32,000 nucleotides of DNA from Candidatus Saccharimonadota bacterium (lineage in GTDB: Bacteria > Patescibacteriota > Saccharimonadia > Saccharimonadales > Saccharimonadaceae): assembly GCA_016700015.1 (NCBI GenBank), contig CP064995.1, positions 660,001 through 692,000 of the forward strand. The letters are read 5' to 3'. Shown one piece after another: positions 411 through 31,775 of this stretch. The notes under the pieces are model-generated. The model worked only from the letters and a program-made list of their open reading frames with translations. It did no database searches and was not told the origin of the DNA. Position 1 is the stretch's first letter. The number at the start of each line of letters is the position of its first letter. Position numbers and translations under genes: made by a program.

Positions 411-1382
411 TCATTGTTCCCACGAGAAATTGGTATGCCCAAAGTGGCCATAGCGTGCTGTCTCTTCATACACCAGACGACGGAGATCGAGTGCAGTAAT
501 AATACCCCGCGGGCTAAGATCATAGCCTTCGACGACTTCTTGTACGCCGTCGATTGTCACCGTCGCTTCAAGTGGCTGATCATAACCTATGGCATACGCC
601 AGGTGACAAAACACTTCATGAGCACCACGTTTCTTCAGATAGTCACGTGCGATCTTGCGAGCCATATAGGCGGCACTACGATCGACCTTGCTCGGATCTT
701 TGCCACTAAAGCACCCACCCCCAATAGGTATGCTTGGGCCGTAGTTGTCGACAACCAATTTACGCCCAGTCAGACCGGCATCAGCATCAAATCCACCCTG
801 GTGCCAATCACCCGCAGGGTTGGCATGAATGACAAGGTTGTCGCTACAGGTAGCTCTTGTCTCACTCTGAGCCCAGGCTTCAACAGCCGCCTTCAGCTCA
901 TCATGTGGAGCGTTTTGAAAACTTGCAACCAAAGCAGTGATCTGACCATCTTTGAGTGTCACCTGTGTCTTGCCGTCAAACGGCCAGCGCTCATACAAAT
1001 ATTGGTTGAGGCTGCGACTGAGAACGACTTCAAGCGGCAACAATTCCTCTGTTTCACTACACGCATACCCCACCATGATACCTTGGTCGCCCGCACCGCC
1101 AGTATCAACGCCCTGTGCAATCTCTGGGCTTTGCTTTACTAAATGAACGGTCAGTTCGACACCACCAGCAATTCGCGTCACAATCGGCTCAATCTCTGGA
1201 TGTTCGGTGCTAGTGACTTCACCGGTAATAAATACTTTGCCATGTCCACCAACTGTTTCCACGGCCACGCGAGCGGTCGGATCTTTTGCTAGATAGGCAT
1301 CCAGTATTGCATCCGATATTTGATCACATAATTTATCTGGGTGCTTTGGTGAAACTGATTCAGCTGTTCGAAATCGACTCAT
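411..1382 (-). CDS. metK: S-adenosylmethionine synthetase, compact 323-aa form
   Basis: Translation carries MetK hallmarks: SESVSPKHPDKLCDQISDAILDA, GAGDQGIMVGYA, GLTGRKLVVDNYG, GGGCFSGKDPSKVDRSAAYMAR, ETARYGHFG. It is about 60 aa shorter than E. coli MetK through several internal deletions. Confidence 0.95.
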   Translation of the reverse strand: MSRFRTAESVSPKHPDKLCDQISDAILDAYLAKDPTARVAVETVGGHGKVFITGEVTSTEHPEIEPIVTRIAGGVELTVHLVKQSPEIAQGVDTGGAGDQGIMVGYACSETEELLPLEVVLSRSLNQYLYERWPFDGKTQVTLKDGQITALVASFQNAPHDELKAAVEAWAQSETRATCSDNLVIHANPAGDWHQGGFDADAGLTGRKLVVDNYGPSIPIGGGCFSGKDPSKVDRSAAYMARKIARDYLKKRGAHEVFCHLAYAIGYDQPLEATVTIDGVQEVVEGYDLSPRGIITALDLRRLVYEETARYGHFGHTNFSWEQ

Positions 1383-2694: not shown

Positions 2695-2717
2695 ATGTAT
2701 CTCTTTGCCTCCTTTTA

Positions 2718-5700
2718 TTATCGCACTGTCAGCGCGATCGTCAGTTTTGCTTTTTCCACGTTTACTTCAGTTTGATAACCTTCGGTAACTTCTGCAAATG
2801 CTACAGCGAGTGTTTCAGCCTGAATCGTATCTGCATGTTCGTCAATTGCCTTTTTTAACTCTTCATCGTCAGTCGCAAGATGTAGTATGATGCGATCATC
2901 GACGTTGAGTCCGGCATTTTTGCGGGCAGCCTGGACGTAGCGGATGACTTCACGCATCAGTCCTTCTCGCTTCAGTTCTGGGGTGAGTGTCTCGTCGATT
3001 TTCACCGCGTCGCCAGTTTTTACCTCTTTGACGTTCACCTCATCGGTGAGGATGCTGACGAAATCAACATGTTCGCCAAGTGACGGTACCGTCACACTTG
3101 AGAGTGGTTGGCGGACTTTCAGCCCAGCCTTAGCGCGCAAACTCAATGCTTCGTTGACGTAGCCGCGCACTGTCTCCATGTCGTTCATGACGAGCTCGTC
3201 GACACGACCGGCTGGCAGCCAATCTTTGAGGTGGATCGATTCGTCATCACCCGTCAAATTGTGATACAACTCCTCAGCCAGGAATGGTGTAAATGGCGCT
3301 AGTACATACGCAAGCCTCACCAGCACATAGTGCAATGTGCGGTACGCCATCGCCTTGTCGTCGTCATCTTCACTCTTCCAAAACCGCCGACGACTACGCC
3401 GCACAAACCAGTTACTCGCGTCGTCGATGAACGGTAAGATCGGGCTCATGGCATCAGGTAAATTGTAAGCGTCCATATGCTTCTCAACCTCAGCTACGAG
3501 CTGATGTAACCGACTAATAATCCATATATCCAACGGATTTTTTAACCCCTCTAACACCTCTCCACGACTATATAAAGGAGTCTCCTTTATACTCTTTATA
3601 TCCCATTGCCAGTCGTCGGCTTCGGCGTAGAGCGTGAAGAAGTCATACATATTCCAGATCATGCTGAGTTTGCGCGCCACGTCACCCACTTCTTTGTCCT
3701 GCAGTGCGAAATCTTCGCCGCTGAGAAGTGGGCTCGATAACAGTAGGTAGCGCAAAGAGTCAGCCGAAAACTTATCCATCAGCTCATTGGGGTCAGTGTA
3801 ATTGCCATAGCTCTTGCTCATCTTGCGGCCGTCGTTGCCCGCCACGTTGCCGGTCACGATAACATTTTTGAAAGCATGCGTACCAAATAGCGCTACGTTA
3901 ACCGCGTGGACATAGTAAAACCATGCGCGAACTTGACCGATGTATTCGACGATGAAATCACCCGGGAAATTTTCTTCAAATTTTTGCTTGTTTTCAAACG
4001 GATAGTGAAACTGTGCGAATGGCATACTGCCGCTCTCAAACCAACAATCAATCACCTTGTCGATGCGATGATACTCTTCGCCGTCAATGCTAAATGTCAC
4101 GTCGTCTATCCACGGTCGGTGATAATCCGCTAACTCAACACCCGATAATTCTTTGAGCTCAGCATAGCTACCGACAACTTTTACCTTGCCCGACTCGCTC
4201 TTCCAGACTGGCATAGCAGTCGCCCAGAAGCGGTCGCGGCTGAGGTTCCAATCTGGTGCTTGCTCGACCGTCTTAGCAAAGCGGCCATTTTTGACATGCG
4301 GCGGAAACCAGTTGATCGGACCGTTTTCCTCGAGCATCTGCTCGCGCTGGCAATCGATGTCCATAAACCAACTCGGGTGTGCGCGGTACATGAGCTTCGT
4401 GCCGCAGCGGTGACAATGCGGGTATGAGTGGCGAATATAATCAATCTTCCACACCACACCGCGCTCGTGCAGGTCTTTAGCAATCGTCTTGTTGGTCGCC
4501 CAGACGTTTTCGCCCGTCCAATCGCCTTCGGTGAAGAGCCCATTCTCATCGATAGTATGCACGATCGGTATACCGTTTTCTTTGGCGAGTACAAAGTCTT
4601 CTTCACCATAGGCCGGTGCGATATGAACAATCCCCGTACCGTCCTCGTGGCTGACATAGGGAGCCGACCAAACCTTGTGCGCATTCTCGCCGCGATCAAC
4701 AAACAGCGGCTCATACGATCGCCCGACAAGTTCTTTGCCTTTGAATTCTCGAATAATCGTATACTCAAGCGGGTGATGTTTTTCATCACGCATGACCTTG
4801 TCCAACAGTTCTTTCGCAAGTATCAAACGTTCCCCGCCCTGCTCAACTTCGACATAAGTCAGTTTCTCATTCACCGCCACAGCCGTATTTGCTGGCAATG
4901 TCCATGGCGTCGTCGTCCATGCGAGTAGGCATGGCTCATTGATCTTATCATCAACAATTTTGCCATCAACTAATTCTTTCACCCGCTTCTCAACTTCGAT
5001 AAAAGCAGATCGACTAGCCAATAGTCGGCTTTCCCGATCATCAACCATACCGGGATCCTTGATATCCCACCATATAACGTTCTCCCCAACCAACCAACCT
5101 GGCGTCTGCCAATGCTCTGCCATATTTACAATCAAGTCGTACCCTTTAATCATATCGGACGACAGTTTATTTCGAGGAGCATCAGAAATATCAATTCCAA
5201 GCTTTTCCAGAATTGTAAGTTTAGCCGTTGATTCATATGCCTTGCCCAGCTCTTCTGTCTTCTTTTTCTCAAGTTCGGCGATCGTTCCTTCACGAAATTC
5301 TTTTCCATAACCTGTTGCGACACCATCAGCATTTGCACTCTCTGTAAGCTGGTTATAGATGACTCGTGCCATTTGTGATCGTCCTATATTCTCACAGCAT
5401 ACGAATAAGACTCTTGAGTGTGGCGTTAACTGAATGTTTTTTTGTTGTGAGGCATCATCTTTTAACTTAAATTTCACATACACACTCGGGTCAGTCACGT
5501 CCTGATACGCCCCGGCATCCATGGTGACTTCTGCCTTACTGAGCGGAGTGGCATCAAGCGTGCAGTACATGAGCACCTTTTCGCCCTCGTAGATCTTGCC
5601 CTTGTCGTACAGTTCTTTGAATGCCCACCAGACTGATTCCATATAGTCTTTGTCCATGGTTTTGTAGGCGCCTTTGAAATCAACCCAGCGACCGATGCGA

Positions 5701-6107
5701 TCGACCACGTCTTCCCACTCACCACTCGTTTGGACCATATTGTTGCGGCAGGCGATGATGTATTTTTCAAGCCCATAATCAAAGACTTCTTCGCGACTGT
5801 TGATGCCGAGTTTTTTCTCGGTAAATCGCTCCGCTGGCAGGCCATGACAATCCCAGCCCCAAACTCGTTCGACCCGCTTGCCTTTCATGGTCTGATAGCG
5901 CGGTATCGCGTCCTTCACGATACTACTGAGTAGCGTGCCATGATGCGGATTGCCCGAAATGAACGGCGGCCCATCGTAAAAGACATAGCTGTTGTCTTTG
6001 CTGCGGTTCTCAACCGACTTTTCAAATGTCTTGTCGGCCTTCCACCGCTGCACCCAATCTTTTTCGTATTCGATCGCCTTGCGGCGGGTGTTTGCTTTAA
6101 ATTTCAT
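2718..6107 (-). CDS. ileS: isoleucyl-tRNA synthetase, type 2, carrying an inserted ~175-aa phosphatase-like domain
   Basis: HIGH-type motif PHHGTLLSS, KMSKS present, CP1 block TTTPWTLPAN, WDCHGLP, and a long type-2 C-terminal extension. The preferred start is the ATG at 6107 (MKFKANT...), with AAGGAG 5 nt upstream; the ORF-track start at 6131 has no such site. Confidence 0.95.
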   Translation of the reverse strand: MKFKANTRRKAIEYEKDWVQRWKADKTFEKSVENRSKDNSYVFYDGPPFISGNPHHGTLLSSIVKDAIPRYQTMKGKRVERVWGWDCHGLPAERFTEKKLGINSREEVFDYGLEKYIIACRNNMVQTSGEWEDVVDRIGRWVDFKGAYKTMDKDYMESVWWAFKELYDKGKIYEGEKVLMYCTLDATPLSKAEVTMDAGAYQDVTDPSVYVKFKLKDDASQQKNIQLTPHSRVLFVCCENIGRSQMARVIYNQLTESANADGVATGYGKEFREGTIAELEKKKTEELGKAYESTAKLTILEKLGIDISDAPRNKLSSDMIKGYDLIVNMAEHWQTPGWLVGENVIWWDIKDPGMVDDRESRLLASRSAFIEVEKRVKELVDGKIVDDKINEPCLLAWTTTPWTLPANTAVAVNEKLTYVEVEQGGERLILAKELLDKVMRDEKHHPLEYTIIREFKGKELVGRSYEPLFVDRGENAHKVWSAPYVSHEDGTGIVHIAPAYGEEDFVLAKENGIPIVHTIDENGLFTEGDWTGENVWATNKTIAKDLHERGVVWKIDYIRHSYPHCHRCGTKLMYRAHPSWFMDIDCQREQMLEENGPINWFPPHVKNGRFAKTVEQAPDWNLSRDRFWATAMPVWKSESGKVKVVGSYAELKELSGVELADYHRPWIDDVTFSIDGEEYHRIDKVIDCWFESGSMPFAQFHYPFENKQKFEENFPGDFIVEYIGQVRAWFYYVHAVNVALFGTHAFKNVIVTGNVAGNDGRKMSKSYGNYTDPNELMDKFSADSLRYLLLSSPLLSGEDFALQDKEVGDVARKLSMIWNMYDFFTLYAEADDWQWDIKSIKETPLYSRGEVLEGLKNPLDIWIISRLHQLVAEVEKHMDAYNLPDAMSPILPFIDDASNWFVRRSRRRFWKSEDDDDKAMAYRTLHYVLVRLAYVLAPFTPFLAEELYHNLTGDDESIHLKDWLPAGRVDELVMNDMETVRGYVNEALSLRAKAGLKVRQPLSSVTVPSLGEHVDFVSILTDEVNVKEVKTGDAVKIDETLTPELKREGLMREVIRYVQAARKNAGLNVDDRIILHLATDDEELKKAIDEHADTIQAETLAVAFAEVTEGYQTEVNVEKAKLTIALTVR
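4968..5417 (-). other. LMW-PTP / ArsC-fold domain encoded in-frame inside ileS
   Basis: The sequence reads SRVLFVCCENIGRSQMARV (C-X5-R-S P-loop, nt 5399..5376), ...ILEKLGIDISDAPRNKLSSDMIKGYDLIVNMAE..., ...NVIWWDIKDPG (DP general-acid motif) and SAFIEVEKRVKELV. All three canonical blocks of the family appear in the canonical order. Confidence 0.75.
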
Positions 6108-6486
6108 CTCTACTCCTTGCAATTGCATCACCCATGCTTATTGGTTCATCACTCACTTTATTCCTCTCGGTATTTGCCATGCCTTGCTCGTTGATATTAT
6201 TAAAGTAAACGCTGAATGACTTATTTGGATAAACTTGGTTCAATCCTGAGATGAAATTGTTAGCAATCGTTTGTTGATCTGGTCGTTTAACGGCTATGAT
6301 TTCTATAATATAATCTATACCAACCAAATCTAATCCCTCTATTAAGACGGTCTCAATCCCACCTGGGGTAGTAGGTGCGGTAGGAACATTAAGCGCCGCA
6401 GCCGCAATTAGTTTAATCGACCGAGCAATCTCCGAGCGAACCTCTATTTGTTTTTCGGGTAATGCGTATATTTTTAGTAGTGCCAT
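6097..6486 (-). CDS. hypothetical 129-aa protein; beta-alpha-beta x2 pattern reminiscent of the MIF/tautomerase superfamily but lacking Pro-1
   Basis: Start ATG at 6486 with GGAGA 4 nt upstream (the ORF-track start at 6546 lies inside the leader RNA). Its stop overlaps the ileS start by 11 nt. By eye, MALLKIYALP..(helix)..IETVLIEG...YIIEIIAVKR..(helix)..FSVYFNNINEQGMA resembles MIF-like proteins. The region is AT-rich: 23 G+C in the 60 nt 6241..6300. Confidence 0.6.
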   Translation of the reverse strand: MALLKIYALPEKQIEVRSEIARSIKLIAAAALNVPTAPTTPGGIETVLIEGLDLVGIDYIIEIIAVKRPDQQTIANNFISGLNQVYPNKSFSVYFNNINEQGMANTERNKVSDEPISMGDAIARSRDEI

Positions 6487-6680
6487 ACTGTCTCCAATTA
6501 AAAATCCCTTACTAGACACTGGAGCCGCTGGGAGCGGTGGTACCATCCAGTTTCTAAAAAGGGATTCTTTTTAGCACTTCGTTTGTTCGGTCTGTCGTGC
6601 CGATACCGGGAAGTTCTACTGGCCCAATGGTTTTCTTCTTCCTAACTTCGCAGCTGATACCTGCTCATCCACCAATGGAG
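6487..6680 (-). promoter_or_regulatory. T-box-like leader RNA, putative tRNA-Ile-responsive
   Basis: Minus-strand 6553..6534 reads AAACUGGAUGGUACCACCGC, against the T-box core AAnnnGGGUGGUACCGCG. It folds as an antiterminator-like element: CUGGA/UCCAG helix, UGGUACC(A) bulge, and CCGCU-CCC-AGCGG hairpin. Upstream, GAUGAG...CGAAG (K-turn-like) flanks the hairpin GCAG-GUAUCAG-CUGC, which holds AUC (6658..6656) followed by A. A second AUC lies at 6604..6602. The SD GGAGA (6495..6491) sits immediately 3' of the element. Confidence 0.6.
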
Positions 6681-6702
6681 GAATGTTATAGACCATAGTA
6701 TA

Positions 6703-7236
6703 TCACAATCGGGCTGAATAATGTTCCCTCAGCCGATCAAACACTTCTTGCGAATACGTGTCATGAGTCTCGGGGTCGTCATGGTCATAGAGTGTATTTG
6801 ACACACCGATAAGCTCTGCCTCTTCGAGTGCGGTATAGGTATGCATAACAAACGGCGGTATAAGCAAGGCCCTTGTGCGCTGGTCGAGAATTATTTTTCT
6901 GGAGCCGCCGTAGACGTCCTCCATAAAAAACTCGGCCCTACCCGAAGACAACGATATGACCTCTTGTTTGATACGGTGAAAATGCTTTCCACCTACTGTT
7001 CCCTCGACAATGCCCTTGGTGTGAAATGCTCGCAACCCCAGCTCAACTTTAGGTGCAAACTTCAGCTCATTGTCGTCGACGTGCAGCATTGTTTCGAGAA
7101 TCGCCTTGGGAAATGCCAGAATTACATGCATCTGGCCTCCAGACTTAGTCTGCCATGGTCCGAGATCCGACTCATAGATAATAATATCGTTGACCGTTGC
7201 CGGCCTGATGGGCGGAATTACCAATGGTGTGATCAT
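6703..7236 (-). CDS. cupin-fold protein, WxcM/FdtA-like (sugar 3,4-ketoisomerase-like domain)
   Basis: 177 aa. GGKHFHRIKQEVISLSSGRAEFFMEDV...LLIPPFVMHTYTALEEAELIGVSNTLYDHDD resembles the RGxHAH...Q...G...ip.g..h......l.v.as..yd..d pattern of WxcM-like domains. Confidence 0.55.
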   Translation of the reverse strand: MITPLVIPPIRPATVNDIIIYESDLGPWQTKSGGQMHVILAFPKAILETMLHVDDNELKFAPKVELGLRAFHTKGIVEGTVGGKHFHRIKQEVISLSSGRAEFFMEDVYGGSRKIILDQRTRALLIPPFVMHTYTALEEAELIGVSNTLYDHDDPETHDTYSQEVFDRLREHYSARL

Positions 7237-31656: not shown

Positions 31657-31705
31657 TTCTTGAAAATTCGGCACCGTGCTAGTTTCCCACTTGTGGCAGT
31701 ATAAT
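31634..31705. repeat. 72-bp direct repeat, copy 2 (the last 39 nt of the 5S rRNA gene plus its terminator)
   Basis: Perfect match to 31427..31498, with a 207-bp period. Confidence 0.95.
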
Positions 31706-31775
31706 CGCCGCTGATGAGCTTGACTTCTGTGTTCGGAATGAGAACAGGTATTTCCTCATCGCCATGGGCACCGAA
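31667..31775 (-). rRNA. rrf: 5S ribosomal RNA
   Basis: Minus strand reads UUCGGUGCCCAUGGCGAUGAGGAAAUACCUGUUCUCAUUCCGAACACAGAAGUCAAGCUCAUCAGCGGCGAUUAUACUGCCACAAGUGGGAAACUAGCACGGUGCCGAA. The conserved CCGAACACAGAAGU.AAGCUC..CAGCG.CGAU core is present, and the helix I termini pair (9 bp including 2 G-U). Confidence 0.85.

Follow-up and report, generated by a model that had tools for sequence, protein, structure and literature searches.

The locus described here raises the question of why an essential enzyme of translation, isoleucyl-tRNA synthetase (IleRS), should carry a second enzyme-like domain in the middle of its chain, how this domain came to be there and what it may do. The gene concerned, ileS, lies in a stretch of 32,000 nucleotides from Candidatus Saccharimonadota bacterium (GenBank assembly GCA_016700015.1, contig CP064995.1, positions 660,001 to 692,000 of the forward strand), the whole of which is referred to below as the window. 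Bacterial aminoacyl-tRNA synthetases (aaRS) are regarded as architecturally conservative, catalytic additions to them are rare, and domain accretion is usually seen as a eukaryotic hallmark. A preliminary description of the window had pointed to an in-frame domain of the low-molecular-weight phosphatase (Pfam LMWPc)/ArsC fold in this IleRS, an assignment that has held up in profile searches, structure prediction and structural comparison. What that description missed is that the window ileS represents a single allele at a modular site that is polymorphic and common to many Saccharibacteria: between VKF and LLAWTTTPW, these bacteria have a position at which cassettes can be replaced.

A phosphatase-type domain in an intact synthetase

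The open reading frame (ORF) of ileS occupies 2718..6131 of the minus strand. Its true start is taken to be the ATG at 6107, because an AGGAG Shine-Dalgarno sequence precedes it and homologues begin with MKFK (Table 1). The encoded protein passes the NCBIfam ileS model (TIGR00392; 803.5 bits, cut-off 621.4), contains the Pfam domains tRNA-synt_1, Anticodon_1 and DUF5915, the last of these being the type-2 C-terminal domain (PF19302, 76 bits), and has a GTGIVH motif alongside PHHGT, KMSKS and LLAWTTTPWTLPAN; the positions of PHHGT, KMSKS and the editing motif indicate that the synthetase core is intact. The window ileS encodes an intact, complete type-2 IleRS. The protein is 100% identical to P0003, which is annotated as 'class I tRNA ligase family protein [Candidatus Saccharibacteria bacterium]', and the gene can be regarded as the housekeeping copy, since its neighbourhood (NrdR, VKOR, ileS, metK) is the same as that of insert-free orthologues.

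In this protein the hairpin loop leading into the connective peptide 1 (CP1) editing domain, which is short and solvent-exposed, is replaced by a complete, independently folding domain. The module is in frame and takes the position of that loop, with DPSVYVKFKL before it and LLAWTTTPW after it, about 3 residues upstream of TTTPW, the IleRS editing motif, in the region where the CCA end binds. The preliminary description had accordingly located the insert at the entry to the editing domain, and the coordinates that it gave for the insert (4929-5462) and for its C-X5-R-S motif (5376..5399) are exact. It had also noted that the insert is richer in AT than its surroundings, and this is the case: G+C content (GC) is 42.1% and G+C at third codon positions (GC3) 36.9% in the insert, against 50.5% and 58.5% in the remaining ileS, and no segment of equal length elsewhere in the gene reaches so low a GC. 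This base composition fits a later acquisition, as had been suggested.

A search of the insert alone against Pfam, which the preliminary description had proposed, returns LMWPc (PF01451) at 33.9 bits, above the gathering cut-off of 23.2, and related inserts reach 38-51 bits. A profile made from 14 inserts matches ArsC and low-molecular-weight protein tyrosine phosphatase (LMW-PTP) chains in the PDB (E 1e-17 to 1e-6), with 1y1l at 1e-17, Synechocystis ArsC at about 1e-15 and the ArsC branch at 1e-17 to 1e-12, followed by classical LMW-PTP at about 1e-6 and by YwlE chains at 2e-3 to 7e-3. The AlphaFold2 (AF2) model of the insert, based on a 37-sequence alignment, has a mean predicted local distance difference test score (pLDDT) of 91.9 and a predicted template modelling score (pTM) of 0.89. 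Both this model and Foldseek describe a parallel sheet in which the P-loop follows strand 1 and precedes helix 1. The top Foldseek matches (4egs, 1jl3, 1jf8, 7dhd and 4pic; probability 1.00, target-normalised TM-scores 0.66-0.81) are LMW-PTP, ArsC, Wzb and YwlE structures, among which the subfamily is not resolved and the bacterial LMW-PTP 4egs is the best. In the model a short beta bridge connects the flexible N- and C-terminal linkers, and thus the termini are adjacent, as is expected for a domain within a hairpin loop.

The residues on which catalysis would depend have been kept, in agreement with what had been said of the nucleophile Cys, the Arg and the Asp. Alignment positions C22, N25, R28, S29 and D136 are invariant in the 14 inserts, which share 35-65% mutual identity, and P137 is nearly so. 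In the metagenome loci described below, the motif LF[VI]C-X5-RS is present in all 60, the ORF having been picked by that same motif, and DP in 57 of the 60. Two invariant tryptophans (W123 and W132) lie near the D-loop, which has DPG here and not the DPYY of classical LMW-PTP. In phosphoarginine phosphatases of the YwlE type, the nucleophile Cys is followed four positions later by Thr (CTGNTCRS); in these inserts this position is Ile, Val or Ala, and so not of the YwlE type. The window subtype also has a vicinal pair, Cys237-Cys238, of which the second Cys is not conserved in other subtypes. Taken together, the P-loop, the Asp, the fold and the profile matches argue for a bona fide cysteine phosphatase-type domain, which is probably active.

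As for its place within the superfamily, the module remains below the cut-off of every curated NCBIfam subfamily. It scores 28.3 bits against the thioredoxin-coupled ArsC of the pI258 type (TIGR02691; cut-off 174.3) and 23.7 bits against the glutaredoxin-coupled ArsC with a Cys80/Cys82 pair (TIGR02689; cut-off 157.6). The relay cysteines (Cys82/Cys89 pair) are missing from the insert, as had been observed before, the corresponding loop reading NMAEHWQTP, and in the alignment to 2l19 'NLAEKS' stands in place of the Cys-containing 'SLCGSG'. The module does not appear to be an arsenate reductase of any known type. An intein was considered and rejected, as Pfam gives no Hint/intein family and the junctions vary (e.g. 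...EPC/LLAW, ...SYL/LAW and ...VVL/LAW); the Pfam scan of the protein gave no homing-endonuclease signature either. The simplest reading is that the mature protein retains the segment.

A polymorphic cassette site in Saccharibacteria

In 100 of the 120 closest IleRS, all of which are from Saccharibacteria, the site holds 8-35 residues, with exactly 8 in 74 of those 100. The linker has about 22 residues in E. coli and about 17 in T. thermophilus. Most IleRS of Saccharibacteria have a short linker of 8-20 residues and are without an insert, in line with the linker length given in the preliminary description for type-2 IleRS, and the segment is not universal among the latter. On the other hand, LMWPc occupies the site in at least 13 proteins from independent assemblies (P0004, P0005, P0016, P0023, P0024, P0026, P0030, P0063, P0094, P0121 and P0127, and those of loci L002 and L004). 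In a metagenome scan, 48 of 60 loci were composed of the N-terminal part of IleRS, LMWPc and the C-terminal part of IleRS as a single ORF; since the scan used two peptide patterns, such proportions are not prevalences. An assembly chimera, a possibility that had been raised at the outset, was rejected because the same architecture is found in more than 60 independent assemblies.

The site is also used by other modules. Its contents include a NUDIX domain (P0052), an alpha/beta hydrolase of the Ser_hydrolase type (P0029), LMWPc together with NUDIX (P0127) and three mutually unrelated kinds of module of unknown family, with 135 amino acids (aa) in P0017, P0022 and P0035, 123 aa in P0039 and P0054, and 204 aa in P0050. 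The 123-, 135- and 204-aa modules have no significant match in Pfam (to E=10), PADLOC, NCBIfam or the PDB. The PADLOC defence models likewise gave no match for the LMWPc module, and for the NUDIX module they gave one generic NUDIX match only (PDC-S07). In the metagenome loci the site holds LMWPc, LMWPc with NUDIX (308-313 aa), LMWPc with the hydrolase (364 aa) or all three, LMWPc, NUDIX and hydrolase (504 aa), the triple-module IleRS ORFs measuring at least 1565 aa. The order of modules is fixed as LMWPc, NUDIX and Ser-hydrolase, and every array is in frame.

Beyond ileS, an exhaustive HMMER search of 1.84 billion representatives found IleRS to be the only large host protein among the best 150 matches, and 456 member sequences of this LMWPc clade fall into one 90%-identity cluster. 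A word-index search with the insert only gave two free-standing proteins, a number set by the limit of the index and not by true rarity. In locus L026 (329-2494), LMWPc is instead found within the editing domain, following '...LVGKSYESIIT' (about aa 470 of the window protein); this is a second insertion site, and the first site of this protein holds a normal linker of 20 residues.

Exchange of modules between alleles

Comparison of close relatives indicates how such diversity may have come about. The window protein (P0003) and P0004 are 93% identical in the core, with most 40-aa windows at 95-100%, against 43% in the insert; at the DNA level, identity to this sister allele (L008) falls within about 40 nt of the left border and is back to 100% just after LLAWTTTPWTLPAN. 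In other pairs presence and absence are contrasted directly: P0022 and P0012 are 100% identical except that a 19-residue linker is replaced by the 135-residue module, and P0039 and P0043 are 100% identical except that an 8-residue linker is replaced by the 123-residue module. The 135-aa module is nearly identical across three different IleRS backgrounds. Inserts are scattered over a tree built from IleRS cores, and a tree of the LMWPc domain has two groups in which fused domains and free-standing ones intermingle. The simplest reading of these comparisons is that cassettes have been repeatedly gained, lost and replaced by recombination through the conserved ileS flanks. A tblastn search of the module against phage and plasmid collections returned nothing and hence gives no evidence for such a vehicle.

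Two further peculiarities were observed in the sister allele (P0004; L008 8001-11387). It has WTTTTW in place of the WTTTPW that is otherwise conserved in the relatives examined, and its last 70 residues or so are 41-75% identical to the window protein, nearly all of the remaining core being 90-100% identical; the C-terminus of P0004 may represent a second variable segment.

Free-standing relatives and association with NUDIX

The LMWPc clade also comprises free-standing genes, which share the motif NxAE..QTPxWLxGxNVxWW and a C-terminal (V/L)DD.ID tail, and the N-terminal linker of the window module, KDDASQQKNIQLTPHS, is homologous to the N-terminus of free-standing genes of 182 aa. These genes are found in two settings. 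In the first, seen in L001, L003 and L018, a free LMWPc gene directly precedes an insert-free ileS, and the two genes share an ATGA in which stop and start overlap; L001 has two such copies, and this setting covers both LMWPc subtypes. The upstream run in L001 and L003 further includes GNAT, His_Phos_1, a NUDIX domain fused to a P-loop kinase, a chloramphenicol-phosphotransferase-like kinase, an SGNH hydrolase and a cupin. In the second setting, LMWPc lies inside the F1Fo ATP-synthase (atp) operon, where atpA and atpG flank it and a NUDIX gene usually adjoins it or follows atpG. In addition, P0166 is a free NUDIX-LMWPc fusion protein. These fusions, arrays and shared operons mark LMWPc and NUDIX as a recurrent pair that has a specific and repeated association with ileS.

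Some details of these settings deserve mention in their own right. The small accessory genes of the atp operon, which comprise LMWPc of the same clade, NUDIX, an NYN nuclease and a methyltransferase (L010 5001-5495 and 6379-6825; L012 5001-5489; L015 2308-2973, 4543-5504 and 8653-9336; L066-L080), are wedged between subunit genes with overlapping starts and stops, and NUDIX may be present or absent between otherwise identical atp operons. In L001, the NUDIX domain at 1617-2699 is fused to an AAA_33-like P-loop kinase and is followed at 2696-3202 by a 168-aa kinase, the alignment of which with chloramphenicol-phosphotransferase-like proteins is end-to-end but weak (16.6 bits).

Gene neighbourhood of ileS

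The region just upstream of ileS varies between close relatives. In the window it is occupied by a 149-aa ORF, which has no match in Pfam, NCBIfam, PADLOC or the PDB and at the position of which relatives carry other accessory genes, and by a cupin gene that is absent from the equivalent position in L006 and L008 (Table 1). Upstream of ileS, L006 has a gene of the inositol-monophosphatase family, and L008 has Cupin_3, a TehB-like methyltransferase and a CdiA_C toxin-like gene. The last of these (L008 7517-7894, found also in L009 at 6135-6512) is a 125-aa ORF that matches CdiA_C (PF18451) at 53.7 bits, has no attached delivery domain and directly precedes the ileS with LMWPc insert in the closest relative of the window. 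In L004, a PemK/MazF-like toxin gene (4760-5314) directly upstream of ileS starts with a near-exact copy of the first 17 ileS codons. The ileS of that locus (5311-6798) does not extend past about residue 476, where it runs into a RhuM-like ORF close to the end of the contig, and is either a pseudogene or a chimeric contig end; L004 was used only for its insert and upstream genes. Elsewhere in the window, a SAM (S-adenosylmethionine) riboswitch (Rfam RF00162, 51.5 bits) at 1464-1572 on the minus strand lies upstream of metK (411-1382, minus strand), and a 5S rRNA gene (RF00001, 81 bits) is located at 31666-31775 on the minus strand.

Table 1. Coordinates of ileS, of the parts of its inserted module and of the adjoining upstream genes in the window
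Feature	Position	Strand	Basis or remark
ileS, type-2 isoleucyl-tRNA synthetase with inserted module	2718..6107	(-)	1129 aa
KMSKS catalytic motif	3810..3824	(-)	motif position
Editing motif GTGIVHIAPAYGEED	4596-4640	(-)	motif position
LLAWTTTPWTLPAN, threonine-rich CP1 editing-site motif, right cassette border	4887..4928	(-)	conserved in relatives
Inserted LMW-phosphatase/ArsC-fold module, aa 216-393, 178 residues	4929..5462	(-)	Pfam, AF2, Foldseek, GC
C-terminal linker DGKIVDDKINEPC	4929..4967	(-)	G..DD motif kept in fused and free-standing members
D-loop NVIWWDIKDPG with presumed general acid Asp351	5049..5081	(-)	within clade motif NxAE..QTPxWLxGxNVxWW
P-loop CCENIGRS: nucleophile Cys237, Asn240, Arg243, Ser244	5376..5399	(-)	C, N, R and S invariant in insert alignment
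N-terminal linker KDDASQQKNIQLTPHS	5415..5462	(-)	coil, lower pLDDT in both AF2 models
Conserved strand DPSVYVKFKL, left cassette border	5463..5492	(-)	kept in all relatives
HIGH-type motif PHHGT	5934-5948	(-)	motif position
149-aa orphan ORF	6097..6546	(-)	overlaps ileS start by 11 nt; GC 40.9%, GC3 34%
FdtA/WxcM-like cupin gene, variable island upstream of ileS	6703..7236	(-)	Pfam PF05523, 26 bits

Possible roles of the module

The explanation that we favour, with moderate confidence, is that the module is an active accessory phosphatase cassette that is partnered with NUDIX and acts on a nucleotide-type substrate. The small accessory genes that lie upstream of ileS and within the atp operon would form the reservoir of cassettes, with homologous recombination through the highly conserved ileS flanks bringing about their exchange. 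IleRS would retain aminoacylation and editing and would mainly be a constitutively expressed scaffold for the module, a tethered and active cysteine phosphomonoesterase. In the predicted reaction, Cys237 would attack the phosphate held by the P-loop and Arg243 to form a thiophosphate intermediate, Asp351 would protonate the leaving group, and water would then free the phosphate. Because the module is repeatedly paired or fused with NUDIX, its most likely task would be to strip the monophosphate left by a NUDIX pyrophosphatase step on a nucleotide-type compound, for which a 2'/3'-phosphorylated adenosine nucleotide is one candidate. The preliminary description had put forward, as speculation, a coupling of the module's chemistry to editing or aminoacylation.

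Several points weigh against this explanation. The predicted substrate derives from gene association and from nothing else, and the NUDIX modules reach the cut-off of no curated subfamily. The metagenome loci were gathered with two peptide patterns, the trees are neighbour-joining trees that carry no support values, and recombination through the flanks is read from identity profiles. The AF2 model of the full-length protein, made from a shallow multiple alignment of 44 sequences, is poor (pLDDT 65.9, pTM 0.42) and so allows no conclusion on how the module is placed with respect to the editing pocket or the tRNA path. Finally, a second ileS elsewhere in the genome would not be seen in the window.

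Among the alternatives, it is possible, though unlikely, that the modules, tethered where CP1 begins, repair the 3' end of tRNA in cis and free A76 of tRNA-Ile from chemical blocks so that charging can proceed. NUDIX would then remove a 3'-pyrophosphate of the toxSAS type, LMWPc the 3'-phosphate that remains or that RNases leave, and the Ser-hydrolase would cleave the N-acylated aminoacyl esters made by GNAT toxins, with the variability from strain to strain reflecting an arms race with toxins of hosts or competitors. Toxins also block the tRNA 3' end by acetylation of the aminoacyl group and by cleavage. The location of the site, next to where the CCA end binds, speaks for such a role, as does the fact that all three module types are hydrolases with chemistries that fit known blocks of the tRNA acceptor end, including the pyrophosphorylation of the tRNA 3' end by toxSAS-type toxins (10.1101/2021.04.30.441581, PMC11559606, PMC11782079). 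It is also in line with the RNase-toxin-like genes directly upstream of two fused ileS, CdiA_C in L008 and PemK/MazF-like in L004, with a hypervariability of cassettes that is typical of conflict loci, and with a recent preprint describing the Esx secretion system of actinobacterial hosts as a defence against Saccharibacteria (PMC13622651). However, the modules are acidic (pI 4.5-6, with one at 8.9; net charge -3 to -13), which is unusual for RNA-binding domains, free copies of the same clade are found in the atp operon without any link to tRNA, the LMWPc module has no match in PADLOC, and the full-length model (pLDDT 65.9) is too poor for the geometry to be judged. Moreover, we know of no enzyme of the LMW-PTP fold that acts on RNA 3' ends. 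A broader version of the idea, which we consider an unlikely one, is that the hairpin at the editing-domain entrance is a programmable dock, in which swapped hydrolases undo attacks on the tRNA-Ile 3' end or on adenine nucleotides; the attackers would be toxins of hosts, competitors or phage-defence systems, and the locus would be hypervariable in the manner of immunity genes.

It has to be considered, too, that the module could act as a protein phosphatase, removing phosphate from phosphotyrosine or phosphoarginine on IleRS or other proteins and thereby regulating translation or protecting proteins from inactivation or degradation that depends on phosphorylation, which appears distinctly unlikely. 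Membership of the LMW-PTP superfamily and the bacterial LMW-PTP 4egs as top structural match are consistent with it, and by the rule from the YwlE literature the Ile/Val at the discriminating P-loop position is that of the phosphotyrosine type. By profile, however, the module is nearer to the ArsC branch (1e-17 to 1e-12) than to LMW-PTP (about 1e-6) or YwlE (about 1e-3), it has DPG where the aromatic pair of DPYY would stand, its constant partnership with NUDIX points to nucleotide substrates, and no tyrosine or arginine kinase was seen in the neighbourhoods examined.

We give little credence to the view that the module is a neutral or selfish passenger, lodged in a permissive loop that adjoins a recombination-prone gene island, where domains that are expressed for free are hard to lose and their attachment brings no benefit. 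Such a passenger could account for the seven unrelated module types at the site, for the presence or absence of modules between otherwise 100% identical alleles, for the small accessory genes wedged into the atp operon as well, and for the partial duplication of the ileS 5' end upstream in L004. On the other hand, catalytic residues are strictly kept among inserts as divergent as 35% identity, each of the two LMWPc subtypes, A and B, occurs fused to ileS as well as directly upstream of it, the order of modules is fixed, and among the best 150 matches IleRS is the only large host of the clade. These four features speak for a module that is under selection and somewhat specific to IleRS, although they do not prove that attachment is important in itself. 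Very improbable, lastly, is an arsenate reductase working with an external thiol, or a thiol/redox sensor that modulates IleRS, since, even though ArsC enzymes are the nearest solved relatives by sequence and the window subtype has the vicinal Cys237-Cys238, NLAEKSQTP replaces the Cys-containing relay loop, the ArsC models of NCBIfam give only 24-28 bits where 158-174 are required, Cys238 is not conserved in other subtypes and no ars genes are nearby in the neighbourhoods examined.

Implications

Whatever its substrate may be, the favoured accessory phosphatase belongs to a wider pattern, in which the essential IleRS of ultra-small symbionts bears one to three extra hydrolase domains in a single surface loop, and an essential translation enzyme is used as a dock for interchangeable accessory enzymes. 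A polymorphic, modular hydrolase site of this kind is more unusual than a single fusion, and it offers a clear case of domain-level recombination within an essential gene. It also provides a natural map of the tolerance of IleRS to large insertions, which is useful for engineering, and draws attention to an uncharacterised phosphatase clade that appears functionally tied to NUDIX, IleRS and ATP synthase. Should the tRNA acceptor end or toxic nucleotides indeed be their substrates, the modules would constitute a new layer of translational quality control or immunity. In current annotation such IleRS go under no more specific name than 'class I tRNA ligase family protein', or under no name.

Relation to known systems

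In the literature no paper was found on IleRS with LMWPc, NUDIX or hydrolase inserts, nor on insertions in the IleRS of Saccharibacteria. The terms Saccharibacteria, Patescibacteria and phosphatase are absent from a 2026 survey of 96,219 IleRS sequences, in which 'insertion' denotes the ARD2/INS subdomain. Precomputed Pfam annotation does list PF01451 on several of these IleRS, and the architecture is therefore visible in annotation and apparently unremarked. The author of the preliminary description knew of no aaRS with such an inserted domain. This stands in so far as no publication on the LMWPc fusion was found; it does not stand for extra domains in general, as NCBIfam already curates an IleRS with GNAT (NF040702, ileS_w_GNAT, 'isoleucine--tRNA ligase, N-acetyltransferase domain-containing'), on which no publication was found. 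An extra catalytic domain in IleRS is thus not wholly without precedent, the domain being GNAT in NF040702 and LMWPc in the window. The window IleRS is not a member of that family (278.4 bits, cut-off 1999), and Pfam detects no acetyltransferase family in it. Window residue 434 aligns to model position 446, and the comparison suggests that the NF040702 insert is similar in size and located at about the same place.

With the LMWPc superfamily (PF01451; 4egs, 1y1l, pI258 ArsC, Wzb, YwlE) the window module shares the fold, the Cys-X5-Arg-Ser motif with its Asn and the Asp of the D-loop. It differs in being embedded in another enzyme, in having some 25-30 extra residues after strand 2 and in its QTPxWLxGxNVxWW motif, and it is without the ArsC relay cysteines and without DPYY. 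By these sequence features, the module is assigned to the LMWPc superfamily, outside every characterised subfamily.

Eukaryotic aaRS carry appended or inserted domains such as GST, WHEP, EMAPII and UNE. The Saccharibacteria inserts resemble these in that a new domain is added and the core function is kept, but the eukaryotic additions are lineage-fixed, mostly non-catalytic and usually terminal, whereas the Saccharibacteria ones are catalytic hydrolases that are internal, modular and strain-polymorphic. Like inteins and the insertions in rRNA of the candidate phyla radiation (CPR), the window insert occupies a conserved site of an essential gene, is patchy among close relatives and has a foreign composition; unlike inteins, it encodes a conserved enzyme and has neither Hint nor conserved splice residues. 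Lastly, although the host here is a housekeeping aaRS and the modules are general hydrolases without a demonstrated toxin or immunity link, the site resembles polymorphic cassette loci, such as toxin/immunity tips and the target-recognition domains of HsdS, in its conserved flanks, its swapped modules and its near-identical alleles.

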